A stretch of 64,000 nucleotides of DNA from positions 53,754,001 to 53,818,000 of the forward strand of contig OZ287757.1 of the NCBI GenBank assembly GCA_965649765.1, given 5' to 3'. The notes beneath the pieces are model-generated. The model was not told where the DNA came from and did no database searches. It saw nothing but the letters and a program-made list of their open reading frames with translations. Position numbers and translations under genes: made by a program. Shown here in pieces: positions 66 to 9,000 of this stretch. Numbering within the stretch: the first letter of the stretch is position 1; each line of letters starts with the position of its first letter. The stretch is from Bispira polyomma (Eukaryota).

Positions 66-3000
66 CTGTGACGACATGACAAATACACTTACACAAAACC
101 TGTTTACAAACAAGTTCACATCTAACTGCTTTTTACATCCAACCATTTACATCCTGTGGAGTAACTTGCTGCAGTAACTTAATCATTGATCTTTAATTAA
201 AAATTTTATCAACCCTTTTGATCCCGAGTAAAAACTGGGGGCCGCGGTGGCCTAGTGGTTAACAAGCATTGTGCTTCACAATCACTGGTTTCCACCTCTG
301 GGCGGCGTGAATTCGAATCCCGTTGATGCCTATGTAGGAAAGGTGGTAGTTCCTTACTGTGGGCCGCTGATTTCAGTACAGAACCTTGATCAACTGTATG
401 CAGTGTTTCCTCCAGCGTTTCCAACTACCCATCCCAATATAACCTAAACAGGTACTAGAGTGAACGTTAAATATCCTAATTCAAAACCCAAGTGAAAACT
501 ATTGCTGAGATCACAGACTGCTTCTGCGGCATTCAACACCAGACTCGCGTATCATTTCTTAATAAAAAAAGTCTGGTGTAATAACAATTTGATATTGCGA
601 GAAACTCTAGGAAAATAAAATCATATTTTTTGCTTTCCCACAGCCAAAGGTTGTGGAAATAATAAATACTCTCAACTGCTACCCGACGACATAGGGGTCA
701 AAAGGGTGCATTGCTATCTCTGTACAAATTGGACTGTATCTAATTTCTGTGACCCCTGTAGCCCTAACACTATACCTGTCTGAATGTATATAACACCTCT
801 CACCTTTTGAATGCCCTGTACAGTTTCCTGTCTAACTCCATACATGTCTCACTGTATATAACACCTCTCACCTTTTGCATGCCATGTACAGTTTACTGTC
901 TAACTCCATACATGTCTCACTATATATAACACCTCTCACCTTTTACTGTCTAACTCTATACATATCTCACTGTAATAACATCTCTCACCTTTTGAATGCC
1001 CTGTACAGTTTACTGTCTAACCCTATACATGTCTCACTGTATATAACACCTCCCACCCTTTGCCCTGTACAGTTTGCTGTCTAACTATATACATGTGTCA
1101 CTGTATATAACACCTCCCACCTTTTGCCCTGTACAGTTTACTGTCTAACTATATACATGTCTCACTGTATATAACACCTCCCACCTTTTGCCCTGTACAG
1201 TTTGCTGTCTAACCCTATACATGTCTCACTGTATATAACACCTCTCACCTTTTGACCTGTACAGTTTGCTGTTTAAAACCCTATACATATCTCAATGTAT
1301 ATAACACCTCTCACCTTTTGAATGCCCTGTACAGTTTACTGTCTAACCCTATACATGTCTCACTGTATATAACACCTCTCACCTTTTGCCCTGTACAGTT
1401 TGCTGTCTAACCCTATACATGTCTCACTGTATATAACACTTCCCACCTTTTTCCCTGTACAGTTTACTGTCTAACCCTATACAAGTCTCACTGTATATAA
1501 CACCTCCCACCTTTTGCCCTGTACAGTTTGCTGTCTAACCCTATACATGTCTCACTGTATATAACACCTCCCACCTTTTGCCCTGTACAGTTTGCTGTCT
1601 AACCCTATACATGTCTTACTGTATATAACACCTCCCACCTTTTGCCCTGTACCGTTTACTGTCTAACGATATACATGTCTTACTACATGACATTCTCAGT
1701 AACTTCTATCCATGTGAGGTTAAAATATTTGGGATGACACACAATTCCGCTGAGCATGCGTATCAATATGCCAAAGCTATACAGGCTGGAAAGGATAAAG
1801 TTGCAGAACTGATTCTTCAAGCCAGGTCAGCTTTTCAGGCGAAAGTTGAGGCCAGCTGTCTCCCATACAATCCAAATTGGTTAGAAAGGAAAGAAAAGGT
1901 GATGGAGAAAGTTATTCGTGCCAAAGCGAAATGCTGTCAGGACTTTTGTGATGTACTGATTGAAACAGATGGTGTTTTTGCTGAAGCTGTACCTGGTAAA
2001 CTCTTCTGGTCAACTGGTCTAAACAAAACGGATATTCTCACTGTGAAAAAAAGCTCTTGGCCAGGAAAAAATAAGCTGGGTAAGCTTCTCACAACCATAA
2101 AGGAAAGCATTGCAGATCGTAACAGTGATGAATAATGTTTCAGTATTGACTTATAACTGTCGAGGACTAAATGACAATGAAAAAAGGTGTAAACTATTTT
2201 TATGGTTAGTAAATCAAAACTTTGACTTAATATTTTTACAAGAAACATTTTGTACTAAACAAAGTGAAGCATACATTAAAGCAGGGTGGAAAGGTAATGT
2301 TGTCTTAGCTCCAACTGACTCTACTCACAGTAGGGGAGTTGGACTTCTAATCAAAAAATATTAGTAGTTATACAGATAAAGATGGTAGAATTCTTCTGAT
2401 AAACATTGAAATTGATGACAACATTCTTAGTGTTGTTTCAGTGTATGCTCCAAATCATGAAAATGATAGAGTTTTATTTTTTGACAAACTAAAACAGTGG
2501 ATACTGCAATATGCAGAAACTTTAGAAAATTTGATTATTGCTGGGGACTTTAATTGCTCTTTAAAACAATCAGATAGATTTCCACCTTCATGTAAAAATG
2601 ATAAAAGTGTGGAAAGTTAGAAAAAATTACTCACACACTGTGACTTAAATGATATTTGGTCCTTTTATAGGCCTAACGTACCAGGGTATACTTACTATAA
2701 TAAGAAATTAAAATGTTACAGCAGACTAGATTATATTTTAGTTAGTAGTAACACACAGTATGATGTTAAAAATATGGCAATTACAGGGCCAGTTAAAAAT
2801 CATGGGGTCATAGACCACTCTGGCCTTTTATTCAAGATAAATGCATCAAAAAGGGGTCCAGGGTACTGGAAGTTAAATAACAGTGTATTATTTGATAAGG
2901 AATATGTTCAATTAATAAACACTGTTATTAGTGACACTATGGTTGAGTATAATAACTTAAACTCTTGTCAATTAATATGGGAAATGGTTAAAGCAAATGT

Positions 3001-6000
3001 AAGAGAATTTTCTATAAAATACTGTAAAAAAAAGTCAAGATAAAGTCAGACATGCTAGATGAAATTCAACACAAAATAGATGATATTAATATATGCATCA
3101 CAAAACTGGAAACTAAAACATCTCTAAACCCAAAAGAATTAGAACAATTGCTGGATTATAAGTTACGCAAGGGACAACTAGAAAGTAACCAGATAAATCT
3201 GTATAATGAGAAAGCCAAGGGATATTCAATTTGTGCAAAAACTAAGTGGATTAAAGAAGGGGATATTCCATCAAAATATTTTTTGGGATTAGAAAAACAG
3301 CAACAATCCAATAATGTTATAAGAAAAATTCCAAGTACTGATAAGGTGTATACAAATAATAGAGATGTACTGAAAGAAATGGTAAAATTTTACGATAATT
3401 TATATGCGGAATCAAACATATCTCAGGAGTCAGTAAAAGAATATATTAATGCATCTACCCCTCCGAAAACTCTTGATGACAATGATAGAAACTTTTGTGA
3501 CAAGTCTTTAACAATAGAAAAAGTAAGACAAACTGGTAAGAGTTTAAAAAGAAACAAATCACCCGGAACTGATGGTTTAACATATGAATTTTACCAAATG
3601 TTTGGGACAAAATTAGAACCAATATATATTAAAATGTTAGAAAAAGTTTTCACAAAGGAATTTTACCTGACAGTATAAAAAAAGCTATTTTAAGCTTGAT
3701 TTTTAAAAAAGGTGACAGATGTCTACTTAAAAATTATCGACCAATTAGTTTAACAAATTGTGATTATAAAATTGTGACATTTGTCCTAGCTAAGCGTCTT
3801 CAAAAAGTTATTTCAAAACTATATATCACATGTCCAAAGTGGATATATAAAGAACAGATATATTGGATTTAACGCAAGATTAATTAATGATGTCATAGAA
3901 TATTGTGAGACCTTGGAAAAACCAGGAGCAACAATTTGCTTAGACTTTGAGAAAGCTTTTGACAAACTTAACTGGTATTTCATGTTTTGTTGTCTGGAAA
4001 AATTTGGATTTGGCAAAAATTTCATCAGTTGAATTAAAATTTTGTATAATCAACCATCTTTTTGTGTAAAAAATAATGGCTGGATTTCTATGGAAACACT
4101 TATGAGGAGAGGTGTAAGACAAGGCTGCGCAGTATCAGCATTACTATTTACTTTAGCTATAGAATTCTTGTCAATTGAAATTAGACAAAGTGATATAATA
4201 AGAGGAATTCGAATATTTGATAAAAGATCATGTTTGATTCAATATGCAGATGATATAACTTTAACATTAGAAGATGAAAACTCAATAATAAATGCACTAA
4301 AATTGTTAAAATTATTTTCTGCAGTGTCGGGTTTAAACACTAAATCTTAATAAGTGTGCAGAATTATGGCTTGTAACGATAAAAAACAACCCAGATGTCT
4401 TTGGAAAAATCAAATTTAGTAGAGGTCCCATAAAATGTCTAGGAGTATATATAGGAATTGATTAAGATTCATGTGAGAAAGCAAACTGGGATAAAAAAGT
4501 AAATCAAGTTGAAAAGTTATTATTAAACTAGAGTAAAAGAAAATTAACACTATATGGCAAATCCACTATTATAAATAACATTATTATTCCAAAATTGGTA
4601 TACAATTTGACAATACTGTATACACCAACTTATATAATTAAACAATTGGAGAATTTAATGTTTAATGTTTTCCTGTGGGGAAAACATCAAAAAGTCAAAA
4701 AGTATATAGTTATTGCAGAACATGAAAATGGAGGTTCAAATGTAACTGATATTCAATCCAAAATAAGAGCTCTGAAGATATTATGGATCCCAAAATTGTT
4801 AAACAATCCAAAAAGTAAAGTATTTAGGATTTTACAAATGTATCTTATATCAATTGGGATAGACATTAATATACTATTACAAATGAATTTCCGCAAAATT
4901 GCTGCTTTTGAAACTATTACAAAAATTCCAAAATTTTATCAAGAAATTTTTATTTCATTCAATAATTGTAAATTAATAAAACCAATAAATAATTTAAATA
5001 ACACTGAAATATTTTGTCAACCGATTTGGGGAAACGAATACTTTAAAGTTAAAAATAAACATCTGTACTACAAGAACTGGGTAGAAAGTGGTTTTATATA
5101 TGTTAAAGACCTTTTCGACCAAAGCGGTGCTCTTTTAAATGAGACACAAGTTCTGAGAAAATTAGAAGATAAATCAAACTGGATAGCAGAATTTTTTACA
5201 CTTAAAAATATCTTTGTAAAATTAGTATGTAAAAAGTATGACACTTTAAAATGCAAATATATTCAAAACAAAGTGTGTAAAAATGTTAGCTTCTGGGCTA
5301 ATGGTAAATTTAATCACCCAGATTCTTTAAAATCAAATGAAATATATAAAATATTGATAAAAAAGAAATATGAAAAACCCTATATAGAAAATATGTGGAA
5401 GAGAAAGTTAGAAATTGAAATAGACAGAAATAGATGGAAAAAAAATATACCTCATGAATTTTAAATCATTTAAATATAAAAAGTTTTCAGAATTTAAATT
5501 CAAAATACTTTACAACATATTAAGTTGTGGTGATAATTTGTGTAAGTGGAACCGAAATTTTACAGGCTTGTGTGCATATTGTAATCAATCCGAAAATATC
5601 TGCCAAGAGTAAAGCAGATCTGGTCGATTATTAGTAATTGTTTAAAAATTAAACGTATTGTTAAAGCACATAATTTTAGGAGTATCTGATGATAACTATG
5701 TAAATGAGAATAAGCTCTTTGTATAGTGCTAATAAGCTATGCCATTTATAGCACTTGGTGTAAATGTAACTTGAACAATATAGATTATAAGTTAGTATGT
5801 ATAAAAGATCATATAAAACAACAACTATTATTCTATGGTGAAGTATATCAAACTATACTAGCACATAACCCTACTAGAAGATCACATATGAAATGTATCA
5901 CAGAATGTATTGTATACCACCTGCATTAGTATGATTTTGTTGTCAATTGTAAAAAGAACTTGAGAAATGTTAGGGTGGACATAGTTTATATCAAGTAGTG

Positions 6001-9000
6001 CTGTAATATAAATCTTGTAACTTAAAGTTTTCAGGTAACATTAGTCTTTGTAATGGTTGAAAGTATTGTTTATATTACTCATACTGTGTATGAAACTGTT
6101 GTTACAAACCTGATGGAACGTTGCCACTCTCGCCTTCCCAGGTTTCGCCTATTATTGTTTGTGAAAAAAGAGTGAATAAAAAAAAAAAAAAAATAAATAA
6201 ATAAAAATGTCTTACTGCATATAACACCTCCACCTCATTTTTGAAGGCCTCAATTTCAAGTCTACCCCTGTGCATGTCTCGCTGTTTTTAACATCCCTCA
6301 CCTTTTGCCCTGTACCGTTCACTGTCTAACTCTATACAAGTCTCACTGTATATACCACCTCTCACCTTTTGCATGCCCTGTAGAGTTTGCTGTAGTAGCT
6401 TGACCTGCTTCCCTGCATCGTCTCCTGACGCCACAACCACCTGTTCTCTGGCCTCAGATTTCAGTAACTCCACCTCATTTTTGAAGGCCTCAATTTGGAA
6501 CTTAAGGCTGTTGTTTTCGTCCTTTAATTTCCGCCATTCCACGGCATCTACAGGCAAAGGATAAGGATACACATTACAAGATCAGGCGCTGTATTCACAA
6601 AGATTCTTAATTACACTTATTCCTAGAATCCACAAACATAAGATTCTAAGCACTTCAAATTGTTTAAGTGACTACGCTCCCTTTCTTTTGGAATTCATTA
6701 TCTCTACATGTGATATTTAGATCCAGTCCCTCGTTCATAAAGCACCCTAAAAAGTCACCTATATATGTACCAGCCTACCCTACATAAAACTTTCCTCGTA
6801 CAAGGTCACATCTCGGGGGGAATACTGACCCTTTTATGTTCCTCAATTTTGGATTTTTGCCCGACAACTTTTTTGAAGAAATCTAGGCCTCGCTAACCAG
6901 CTGCGGCGAAATATGATCAGAATGAAAATGTACACTACTACAAGACTAGCCTTTTTAGATCTAACTGCACCAGAGCCAATAAGCGAAACCCTTTAGAGAG
7001 ATTTGAGAACAAGTGTGTCCTTGGAGATCAGTATAAATTGTGTCCCTACCTGCGTGTTCAGTATAAAGTGTGTCCCTACCTGAGAGTTCAGTATAAAGTG
7101 TGTCCCTACCTACGTATTCAGTATAATGTGTGTCCCTATCTGCGTGTTCAGTATAAAGTGTGTCCCTACCTGAAAGTTCAGTATAAAGTGTGTCCATCCC
7201 TGAGAGTTCAGTATAAAGTGTGTCCCTACCTTGGAGATTAGTATAAGCTGTGTCCCTACCTGAGAGTTCAGTATAAAGTGTGTCTCTACCTGCGTGTTTA
7301 GTATAAAGTGTGTCCCTACCTGAGAGTTTAGTATAAAGTGTGTCCCTACCTTGGAGTTCAGTATAAAGTGTGTCCCTATCTGCATGTTTATTATAAAGTG
7401 TGTCCCTACCTACGTGTTCATTATAAAGTGTGTCCCTACCTGCGTGTTTAGTATAAAGTGTGTCCCTACCTGAGAGTTCAGTATAAAGTGTGTCCCTACC
7501 TGCGTGTTCAGTATAAAGTGTGTCCCTACCTACGTATTCATTATAAAGTGTGTCCCTACCTGCGTGTTTAGTATAAAGTGTGTCCCTACCTGAGAGTTCA
7601 GTATAAAGTGTGTCCCTACCTACGTATTCAGTATAATGTGTGTCCCTATCTGCGTGTTCAGTATAAAGTGTGTCCCTACCTGAAAGTTCAGTATAAAGTG
7701 TGTCCATCCCTGAGAGTTCAGTATAAAGTGTGTCCCTACCTTGGAGATTAGTATAAACTGTGTCCCTACCTGAGAGTTCAGTATAAAGTGTGTCTCTACC
7801 TGCGTGTTTAGTATAAAGTGTGTCCCTACCTGAGAGTTTAGTATAAAGTGTGTCCCTACCTTGGAGTTCAGTATAAAGTGTGTCCCTATCTGCATGTTCA
7901 TTATAAAGTGTGTCCCTACCTACGTGTTCATTATAAAGTGTGTCCCTACCTGCGTGTTTAGTATAAAGTGTGTCCCTACCTGAGAGTTCAGTATAAAGTG
8001 TGTCCCTACCTGCGTGTTCAGTATAAAGTGTGTCCCTACCTGCGTGTTAATTATAAAGTGTGTCCCTACCTGCGTGTTTAGTATAAAGTGTGTCCCTACC
8101 TGAGAGTTTAGTATAAAGTGTGTCCCTATCTGAGAGATCAGTATAAAGTGTGTCCCTACCTTGGAGATCAGTATAAAGTGTGTCCCTACCTTGGAGATCA
8201 GTATAAAGCATGTCCCTATCTTGGAGATCAGTATAAAGTATGTTCCTACCTGCGTGTTCAGTATAAAATGTGTCCCTACCTGAGACTTCAGTCCCTACCT
8301 GAGACTTCAGTGCCCCTCTTCTTCTTCTGTACAGGCTCTCCCTCCTCGTCACTCATCTCCATCTCATCTTCCTTACGCTCCTTCAGGAACTCCTGCTCCT
8401 CCTTCTGTCTGATCTCCTACAAACAACACACAAAACATTGAAACACATTGATACACTAAACACCCCCAGAATGTGATGCACCTCAGTATTACACTGAACA
8501 CCCCCACTAAATGGTGTACCCCAGTATTACACTAAACACCCCACTATATGGTGCACCCCACTATTACACTAAACACCCCAAAATATACTGCACCTCAGTA
8601 TTACACTGAACACCCCCAGTATATAGTGCACCCCAGTATTACACTAAACACTCCAAAATATAGTGCACCCCAGTATTACACTAAACACCCCACTATATGG
8701 TGCACCCCAATATTACACTGAACACCCCAAAATATAGTGCACCTCAGTATTACACTGAACACCCCAGTATATGGTGCACCCACTATTACACTTAACACCC
8801 CAGTATATGGTGCACCCCACTATTAAACTGAACACCCCAGTATATGGAGCACCTCAGTATTACACTGAACACCCCTCAGTATTACACTGAACACCCCCAG
8901 TATTATATTAACCCAGTATCCATAGACAGATGTCACACGTATCTCCCTATTCATATGGCGTAATAACTAGAGATTGCGCCATAACTGAATTCCCTGACAG

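Follow-up and report, generated by a model that had tools for sequence, protein, structure and literature searches.

The window (the whole 64,000-nucleotide stretch of Bispira polyomma DNA that was analysed) holds what is left of a LINE of the L1 superfamily: a decayed copy, truncated at its 5' end, of what is referred to here as family A. The element lies within a satellite array, and its ORF1 remnant encodes a NADAR domain directly 5' of an APE-RT ORF2. The features of the locus are:

942..1684, no strand: 64-bp satellite array, the landing site of the LINE (Tandem Repeats Finder: period 64, 11.5 copies, 91% matches)
1675..1684, + strand: 5' TSD copy, ATGTCTTACT (direct sequence reading)
1686..2135, + strand: ORF1 remnant, comprising NADAR (ORF1p residues 237-385) and the TAA stop at 2133-2135 (Pfam PF08719; phmmer)
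1687..6206, + strand: family A LINE copy, 5'-truncated and decayed (blastn)
2128..5929, + strand: ORF2 remnant with APE endonuclease, reverse transcriptase and C-terminal zinc-binding region (Pfam)
5930..6206, + strand: 3' UTR and A-rich tail (tail ~6164-6206; sequence, with the 3' end shared with four other copies)
6207..6216, + strand: 3' TSD copy, ATGTCTTACT, a 10-mer identical to the 5' copy

The Window Element and its Family

The original prediction of a TSD-bounded element is borne out by the two identical 10-mers, and the 64-bp satellite unit can be read in the sequence continuing 3' of the LINE, past 6207. Between 1687 and 6207, the window shares ~96% identity (blastn) with three full-length copies (L031, L033 and L040). 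Of the 385 residues of ORF1p, the window retains 237-385; the upstream part of ORF1 and the ~10 first residues of the NADAR fold are absent. The ORF2 ATG (2128-2130) precedes the end of the ORF1 stop codon, which gives an overlap of 8 nt. ORF2 is split by stops and frameshifts into at least 11 open pieces, collinear with residues 2-1288 of the undamaged family protein, with window Pfam matches to Exo_endo_phos (2110-2364) and RVT_1 (4042-4350). With its ORF1 start absent, its ORF2 broken and a private Glu-to-Lys substitution at a phosphate-contact residue, the window copy is non-functional.

Family comparisons were made with natural intact genomic copies. Full-length family A copies measure 5.6 kb and have a common 5' end; copies of the family are ~96-98% alike. 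The native ORF1p has 385 residues: two RRMs are followed by two CCHC knuckles, with a YbiA-type NADAR at the C-terminus. The intact ORF2 encodes 1288 residues with Pfam Exo_endo_phos, RVT_1 and zf-RVT domains; among PDB entries it is most similar to human L1 ORF2p (E 6e-89, against 8e-20 for R2). Clade placement is supported only to the level of L1/Tx1-like elements. A comparison of the termini and flanks of the window copy and four other copies revealed poly(A) tails and variable TSDs, which along with frequent 5' truncation are traits of L1-superfamily LINEs, and the five copies have five unrelated flanks, with no specific repeated target among them. Target-specific insertion into the 64-bp satellite, a Tx1-like habit, was considered and rejected because the four other copies lie elsewhere, in flanks that are unrelated; the window copy is in satellite only incidentally. 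Many Tx1 elements insert into a specific repeated target, although this is not obligatory, and family A differs from the many target-specific Tx1 elements in its unrelated sites and poly(A) tails. Family A is a young LINE of the L1 superfamily, dispersed and with a poly(A) tail. The identity and anatomy of the element and of its ORF1p NADAR are regarded as very nearly certain.

A YbiA-type NADAR at the C-terminal End of ORF1

The 149-residue open frame and stop at 1686-2135 (+ strand) match the Pfam NADAR profile PF08719 with an E value of 1.6e-20 and 74.5 bits (gathering cut-off 35.1 bits) over profile positions 12-162 of 163, and the full-length family A ORF1 scores 75.6 bits. This strong match confirms the predicted LINE with NADAR at the end of ORF1. 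The prediction had also described the motif series as complete: the quoted motifs are all present, but the domain itself lacks its ~10 first residues owing to the 5' truncation at 1687. The best NCBIfam model, and the closest by sequence, is TIGR02464 (riboflavin-intermediate N-glycosidase; score 76.7, cut-off 73.7), and matches among PDB sequences are YbiA and the Phytophthora NADAR. A chance motif match is excluded by the profile match together with the genome-wide copies.

An AlphaFold2 model of the full-length family ORF1p was obtained with a pLDDT of 92.7 and a pTM of 0.80. In this model, the NADAR part is predicted to share its fold with the Phytophthora nicotianae NADAR (8bau_A; Z 19.1, rmsd 1.9 Å over 156 residues) and with E. 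coli YbiA (2b3w; Z 17.0), and both RRMs are modelled as RRM folds with Z 8.0-8.7. Identity to the two NADAR structures is only 24-27%, and these are stand-alone enzymes, whereas the LINE domain forms the C-terminal part of a retrotransposon protein that binds RNA. The DarG1-type structure from Geobacter (8bat) superposes on the modelled NADAR with a Z of only 7.8, where the YbiA type reaches 19.1, and the genomic neighbours of the LINE domain are ORF2 and satellite, which sets it apart from DarTG1. The NADARs of DarT1-NADAR (DarG1) systems and of T4-like phages belong to another NADAR subfamily, and the host of the LINE is eukaryotic. The domain is a true NADAR of the YbiA type, in frame at the C-terminal end of ORF1.

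Active-site residues were mapped by HMMER alignment to 8bau and by reference to PMC11543638. The corresponding codons in the window are:

1752-1754: Glu, E43 equivalent
1773-1775: Lys, K50 equivalent
1983-1985: Glu, E125 equivalent
1998-2000: Lys (AAA), D130 equivalent, formerly Glu
2007-2009: Trp, W133 equivalent

In this alignment, E43 is the Glu of SAEH, K50 the Lys of QYAK and E125 the Glu of AEAV. All three vary little or not at all in 12 ORF1s of the same genome and 39 wider homologues, as do the equivalents of Y84, W89 and W133, and all three are retained in the window copy. The LINE NADAR has counterparts of E43, K50, Y84, W89, E125 and W133 of the Phytophthora enzyme, and of its D130, which is either Glu or Asp in the family; clear equivalents of K75 and R79 of the Phytophthora enzyme were not found in the sequence alignment. 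In the Phytophthora NADAR, D130 makes a water-mediated phosphate contact, and the main catalytic Glu is E125, which is also the signature Glu of the YbiA subfamily (PMC11543638).

Six other family A copies were compared and have Glu at the D130 equivalent, as does subfamily B; subfamilies C and D have Asp there, like the coiled-coil type described below. The window copy, with Lys, is the sole exception to Glu or Asp. The Lys is therefore a private Glu-to-Lys mutation of a dead copy. It had been read as a sign of either decay or a binding-only domain, and the first alternative stands, while the second falls, since the Lys is confined to a dead, truncated copy and the family has Glu or Asp. On the question of whether other copies restore the Asp, the more distant subfamilies have Asp, and the compared copies of the same family have Glu.

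Distribution and Constraint of the NADAR Domain

The domain was found in every family A copy examined and in four diverged sister subfamilies of the same genome, so neither outcome named as refuting the prediction, a missing profile match or other copies without the domain, was seen. In the full-length copies that were checked it is present and is not a separate captured exon. For the family A type, a first look at the genome gave 1444 candidates, and more than 150 matches were scored; these hits include open ORF1 frames of 408-419 residues in subfamilies at 60%, 52% and 48% identity. A second, human-L1-like ORF1p scaffold in the same genome has the order coiled coil-RRM-CTD-NADAR. This scaffold yielded 2032 first-look candidates, the majority of the scored ones being stop-free, and its ORF1p superposes on human ORF1p (2yko_A) with a Z of 14.1 over 182 residues. 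The type I and type II naming of ORF1p reportedly goes back to Khazina and Weichenrieder in 2009. The RRM plus CCHC module set of family A is common to the type I ORF1p of plant L1, Tx1, I and Jockey elements, whereas mammalian and plant L1 ORF1p are not known to have the ~150-residue C-terminal enzymatic domain seen here.

Related elements in other assemblies carry the NADAR-ORF1 fusion in an identical two-ORF layout. Among Atlas clusters, for which taxa are sparse, the closest are molluscan (Mollusca) for the window type and annelid (Annelida) for the coiled-coil type. The coiled-coil ORF1p has relatives in ticks that are without the NADAR domain. The RT region is 27-63% identical across the NADAR-bearing LINE lineages, and NADAR and RT trees are broadly congruent.

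To estimate selection, as had been suggested, only between-subfamily comparisons were used, as within-family dN/dS is uninformative for near-identical copies undergoing neutral post-insertion decay. Between subfamilies, dN is 0.22-0.37 and dS is saturated; where estimable, ω is ~0.1-0.17, and the NADAR domain gives values similar to those of the RRM and knuckle parts. NADAR is an inherited, selected part of ORF1p.

An association of this kind has already been published. Tx1 LINE families of the oyster Crassostrea gigas, known from Repbase entries, have a YbiA-family NADAR in their ORF1 proteins (PMC12477816, Genome Biol 2025). These elements share with family A their L1/Tx1-group non-LTR nature, the ORF1p NADAR and a lophotrochozoan host, a likeness drawn from the published description. 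The oyster account consists of one sentence and is without anatomy, selection, residue analysis or the coiled coil-RRM-CTD-NADAR scaffold; what is added here is the anatomy, breadth and constraint evidence. In Ectocarpus, Gypsy LTR retrotransposons have a lineage-conserved YbiA-family NADAR at the N-terminus of Pol (PMC12477816). They are another class of element, in a host of another kingdom and with a different partner for the domain, and would appear to reflect an independent acquisition from bacteria.

One further locus (L047) contains a 1382-residue ORF with two NADARs, in which comparisons with Pfam, PDB sequences and PHROGs identified nothing beyond NADAR. NADAR domains are also present in invertebrate RNA viruses, including bivalve picornaviruses, an oyster nidovirus and annelid RNA viruses.

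Possible Functions of the LINE NADAR

LINE ORF1 proteins with an accessory enzyme domain are, to our knowledge, rare, and we know of none in which that domain is understood. The NADAR described here is predicted to be well folded, has a conserved active site and has been maintained by selection on two ORF1p scaffolds, in many LINE lineages that look active. Of the functions considered, erasure of base ADP-ribosylation as a counter-defence appears the most plausible, the analogy being with NADAR or macro domains of phages and viruses. In this scheme, the LINE RNA would be coated by the RRM and CCHC modules, so that, while target-primed reverse transcription proceeds, the NADAR hydrolase would be tethered to that RNA, to the cDNA and to the target DNA. 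The hydrolase would then cleave the N-glycosidic bond of ADP-ribose on guanine (or cytosine) bases, erasing a host ADP-ribosyltransferase mark that might otherwise block reverse transcription or integration. The outcome would be a counter-defence comparable to that of the orphan NADARs of T4-like phages against DarT1. This mechanism is put forward tentatively, with rather less than even confidence; the whole statement, anatomy and mechanism taken jointly, is judged to lie just below an even balance.

All four NADAR families have members that hydrolyse ADP-ribosyl-guanine in both DNA and RNA (PMC11543638, PMC12945103), and phage orphan NADARs neutralise DarT1 (PMC11257639). As in the LINE, the orphan NADAR of T4-like phages is carried by a mobile element with no adjoining writer gene. 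We know of no documented case, in any animal, of base ADP-ribosylation serving as an anti-transposon defence. A search of the genome for writers with PF01375 and PF03496 gave zero matches, but the controls were equally silent; a search with PF01129 gave three uncharacterised ARTC-type ORFs on contig 14, at 20.79-20.92 Mb.

CARP-1-family guanine-modifying ARTs are concentrated in bivalves. Because the closest Atlas clusters are molluscan and annelid, the link to bivalve CARP-1 is only circumstantial. An arms race is plausible, given that concentration and the NADARs of bivalve and annelid RNA viruses. In a broader form of the proposal, lophotrochozoan hosts would ADP-ribosylate G or C bases of mobile and invading nucleic acids, and LINEs of both scaffolds, perhaps along with Polintons and RNA viruses, would have fixed NADAR erasers. 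The writers could be CARP-1/pierisin-type or other ARTC enzymes. We consider this broader form doubtful. If true, the thousands of LINE copies would be the footprint of an undescribed animal genome defence that acts through nucleic-acid ADP-ribosylation. It raises a testable question: is base ADP-ribosylation used by animals against retrotransposons and viruses?

The fusion of NADAR to RNA-binding modules would also suit an enzyme that acts on ADP-ribose chemistry at RNA ends or on small molecules, for instance one that clears RNA-repair derivatives or NAD-derived groups from LINE RNA as housekeeping during RNP maturation. In line with this idea, a contextual analysis by De Souza and Aravind, for which PMC9503650 gives a summary, ties NADAR to RNA-repair systems and low-molecular-weight ADP-ribose derivatives, and RNA processing has been suggested for the oyster and Ectocarpus elements (PMC12477816). 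The demonstrated NADAR activities, however, are base de-ADP-ribosylation and the riboflavin-intermediate N-glycosidase reaction, with none of the proposed kind shown biochemically, and most LINEs, including those encoding the tick coiled-coil ORF1p relatives, do without the domain. Such a role is considered unlikely.

Conservation of the ADP-ribose-contacting K50, Y84, W89 and W133 equivalents would also be expected of a NADAR that is mainly a reader: by binding ADP-ribose or poly(ADP-ribose), it would guide the LINE RNP to DNA nicks or breaks that PARP has marked, and catalysis would be secondary. The DNA used in LINE integration is nicked, and PARP signalling is expected at such sites. Against this reading, the catalytic E43 and E125 equivalents, which would be superfluous to a binding-only module, are invariant across very divergent families, and we know of no NADAR that acts as a reader; its probability is accordingly low, below that of the RNA-end role.

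The top NCBIfam model, TIGR02464, being that of a riboflavin-intermediate N-glycosidase, would fit a metabolic YbiA-like enzyme, and the domain might otherwise be a functionless ORF1 passenger without benefit to the element. Both are highly improbable: the active site is intact on both ORF1p scaffolds and in LINE lineages whose RTs share only 27-63% identity, and dN remains at 0.22-0.37 despite saturated synonymous sites, whereas a passenger would decay. Finally, nothing was found in favour of a host NADAR exon having been picked up by the window copy alone, and the chance of this is practically nil, because the domain lies in frame and in the same place in every family copy examined, in the sister subfamilies and in elements of other assemblies.

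NADAR in the window copy and its parent family

The NADAR domain encoded here is confirmed as a genuine, family-wide and selected module of a LINE ORF1 protein (ORF1p), of which the window shows a dead copy. Translation of window positions 1686-2135 (+) yields 149 residues and a stop, and contains the NADAR-like motif series that the original prediction placed at the end of ORF1. That claim is borne out by hmmscan: the match to Pfam NADAR (PF08719; E 1.6e-20, 74.5 bits, profile positions 12-162 of 163) is, relative to the gathering score of 35.1, a sequence similarity far beyond chance. Pieces 3' of this frame match Exo_endo_phos and RVT_1.

Features flanking the window LINE
942-1684, and again after 6207: 64-bp satellite, on both sides of the LINE
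1675-1684 and 6207-6216: target-site duplication, 10-mer ATGTCTTACT, the second copy directly 3' of the A-rich tail

Window 1687-6207 shares ~96% identity with other genomic copies (blastn). Full-length copies of this family (family A) are 5.6 kb long, with one common 5' end, a poly(A) 3' end and duplications of 10-15 bp at unrelated sites. These features identify the window element as a 5'-truncated insertion whose satellite location is incidental. It retains only ORF1p residues 237-385, and its ORF2 is split into at least 11 open pieces. Two further satellites, at window 7024-8292 (period 30 bp, 42 copies) and 8452-8875 (period 37 bp, 11 copies), give rise to long but spurious ORFs on either strand, such as 6961-7707 (-).

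The native protein is preserved at three loci (L004, L005 and L009), which keep a 408-aa frame with a C-terminal NADAR; counted from its first Met, this frame is 385 aa long. An AlphaFold2 model of ORF1p was built on 39 homologues (mean pLDDT 92.7, pTM 0.80), and structure searches with it identified two RRM folds (residues ~4-85 and 96-177; Z 8.0-8.7, rmsd ~2 Å) and a NADAR fold (residues 227-383). The latter closely resembles Phytophthora nicotianae NADAR (8bau_A; Z 19.1, rmsd of 1.9 Å for 156 aa) and E. coli YbiA (Z 17.0), whereas the DarG1-type Geobacter NADAR reaches a Z of only 7.8. The NCBIfam TIGR02464 score is also above cut-off. Two CCHC knuckles, weakly matched by Pfam zf-CCHC, lie between the RRMs and NADAR. 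ORF2 of an intact copy (1288 aa) contains APE, RT and zf-RVT. Based on its alignment to human L1 ORF2p (E 6e-89 over residues 11-897) versus R2 (8e-20), the element is placed in the L1 superfamily, an assignment that stops at this level and does not separate L1 from Tx1.

The ORF1 stop (window 2133-2135) and ORF2 ATG (2128-2130) overlap in ATGAATAA. This junction is kept in nine family A copies, including the window copy and those at L003, L004, L007, L008, L009, L013 and L014, and its conservation suggests coupled termination and re-initiation. In contrast, subfamily C has a spacer of ~160 nt between the ORFs. In one family A copy (L012:1423-3141 (+); C10, ~17.789 Mb), a small junction indel puts ORF2 in frame with the NADAR-encoding end of ORF1, giving a 573-aa open frame.

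Breadth and a second ORF1p scaffold

Whether other copies carry NADAR on ORF1 was answered by searching the 1.04-Gb genome in six frames: both genome-wide copies and sister subfamilies do (1444 first-look candidates, >150 scored matches). Among the matches are subfamilies that share ~60%, 52% and 48% identity and keep ORF1 open over 398-419 aa; in several copies of the 52% subfamily, both ORFs are open (413 aa and 1282-1284 aa). A second type of ORF1p is even more common.

L049:2301-3617 (+), C6, ~44.159-44.161 Mb: second NADAR-bearing ORF1p, also at many further places in the genome

This type has 2032 first-look candidates, its scored matches are mostly stop-free (frames of 430-460 aa), and its NADAR is 30% identical to the window type. 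The L049 model (pLDDT 88.6) begins with a disordered head and a coiled coil of 82 residues; next come an RRM-CTD unit, superposable on human L1 ORF1p (2yko_A; Z 14.1, rmsd of 2.5 Å for 182 aa), and then NADAR (Z 21.9 to 8bau). As the window type is built as RRM-CCHC-NADAR, two different ORF1p scaffolds are capped by NADAR in one genome. APE, RT and zf-RVT recur in the L049 ORF2. In ticks, proteins homologous to the coiled-coil part lack NADAR.

Outside this genome, word searches returned 59 and 70 related proteins, with PF08719 in nearly all full-length proteins, and the layout of NADAR-bearing ORF1 followed by APE-RT ORF2 is present in four contigs from other assemblies and one metagenome. 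Atlas clusters, on few records, point to Mollusca for the window type and to Annelida for the coiled-coil type. The association is of a kind already known but barely described, to which the present family adds: several Tx1 LINE families of Crassostrea gigas appear to carry a YbiA-family NADAR in their ORF1 proteins, and an Ectocarpus Gypsy lineage has NADAR within Pol (PMC12477816, Genome Biol 2025). Full-text literature searches found no other treatment of LINE-borne NADAR.

Two other loci encode paired NADAR domains. L047:3025-7170 (+) (C4, ~51.517-51.527 Mb) is a 1382-aa open frame with NADAR at residues 125-269 and 1067-1211, in which nothing else was recognised with Pfam, PDB sequences or PHROGs; upstream, a 296-aa ORF (L047:142-1029 (+)) has a GIY-YIG nuclease domain. 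This locus may be another mobile element. At L048:3132-5063 (-) (C11, ~33.09 Mb), an open frame of 644 aa carries two NADAR domains in tandem (153.9 bits).

Selection and the active site

In a dN/dS comparison between subfamilies, NADAR has a dN of 0.22-0.37 and the remaining ORF1 one of 0.15-0.34; omega is 0.10-0.17 where estimable, synonymous sites being saturated at this distance. Within a family, copies are a few percent apart and omega lies close to 1, in keeping with neutral post-insertion decay. Trees of NADAR and of the RT region (nine elements, 644 columns in common) share their supported groups (family A with the ENA element; the two GCA elements; the coiled-coil type most distant), and conflicts are confined to weakly supported nodes. 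NADAR has therefore long travelled with these LINEs.

Active-site equivalents (HMMER alignment to 8bau; roles from PMC11543638)
E43: Glu of SAEH
K50: Lys of QYAK
Y84 and W89: LPYNPNW
R93: Lys
E125, marker of the YbiA subfamily: Glu of AEAV
D130, water-mediated phosphate contact: acidic residue preceding LFW
W133: Trp of LFW

These equivalents are invariant or nearly so across 12 ORF1s of this genome, 39 wider homologues and 34 second-scaffold homologues. At the D130 equivalent, subfamilies A and B have Glu; Asp takes its place in C, D and the coiled-coil type. The window copy instead has Lys (codon AAA, 1998-2000), which belongs to a set of four substitutions private to it (R42L, E75K, E105K and F118L). 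Because six other family A copies have Glu, this Lys is post-insertion decay, one of the two options originally raised. The dead copy still encodes the main catalytic residues.

Possible roles of the LINE NADAR

All four NADAR families have members that remove ADP-ribose from guanine in DNA and RNA, and some also act on cytosine (PMC11543638, PMC12945103). Phage orphan NADARs are reported to defeat DarT1 (PMC11257639), and some RNA viruses of invertebrates also carry NADAR, among them picornaviruses of bivalves and a nidovirus of oyster (PMC9503650, PMC12377751). By analogy, ORF1p would tether a NADAR hydrolase to LINE RNA, cDNA and target DNA, where it would erase base ADP-ribosylation put on by a host enzyme. 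This counter-defence role is attractive and testable but unproven, and we propose it tentatively. Processing of ADP-ribose on RNA or small molecules is an unlikely alternative role, and a reader or targeting role is more doubtful still. That NADAR is simply a passenger is very improbable.

As to the enzyme that would apply the mark, guanine ADP-ribosyltransferases of the CARP-1 type are concentrated in Bivalvia (PMC12945103). In the present genome, a cluster of three ORFs, each with a single exon and 373-380 aa long, scores above cut-off for Pfam ART (PF01129, ARTC-type ADP-ribosyltransferase); these ORFs are candidate writers.

C14:20789201-20789707 (-): PF01129 match
C14:20863098-20863580 (-): PF01129 match
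C14:20919953-20920426 (+): PF01129 match
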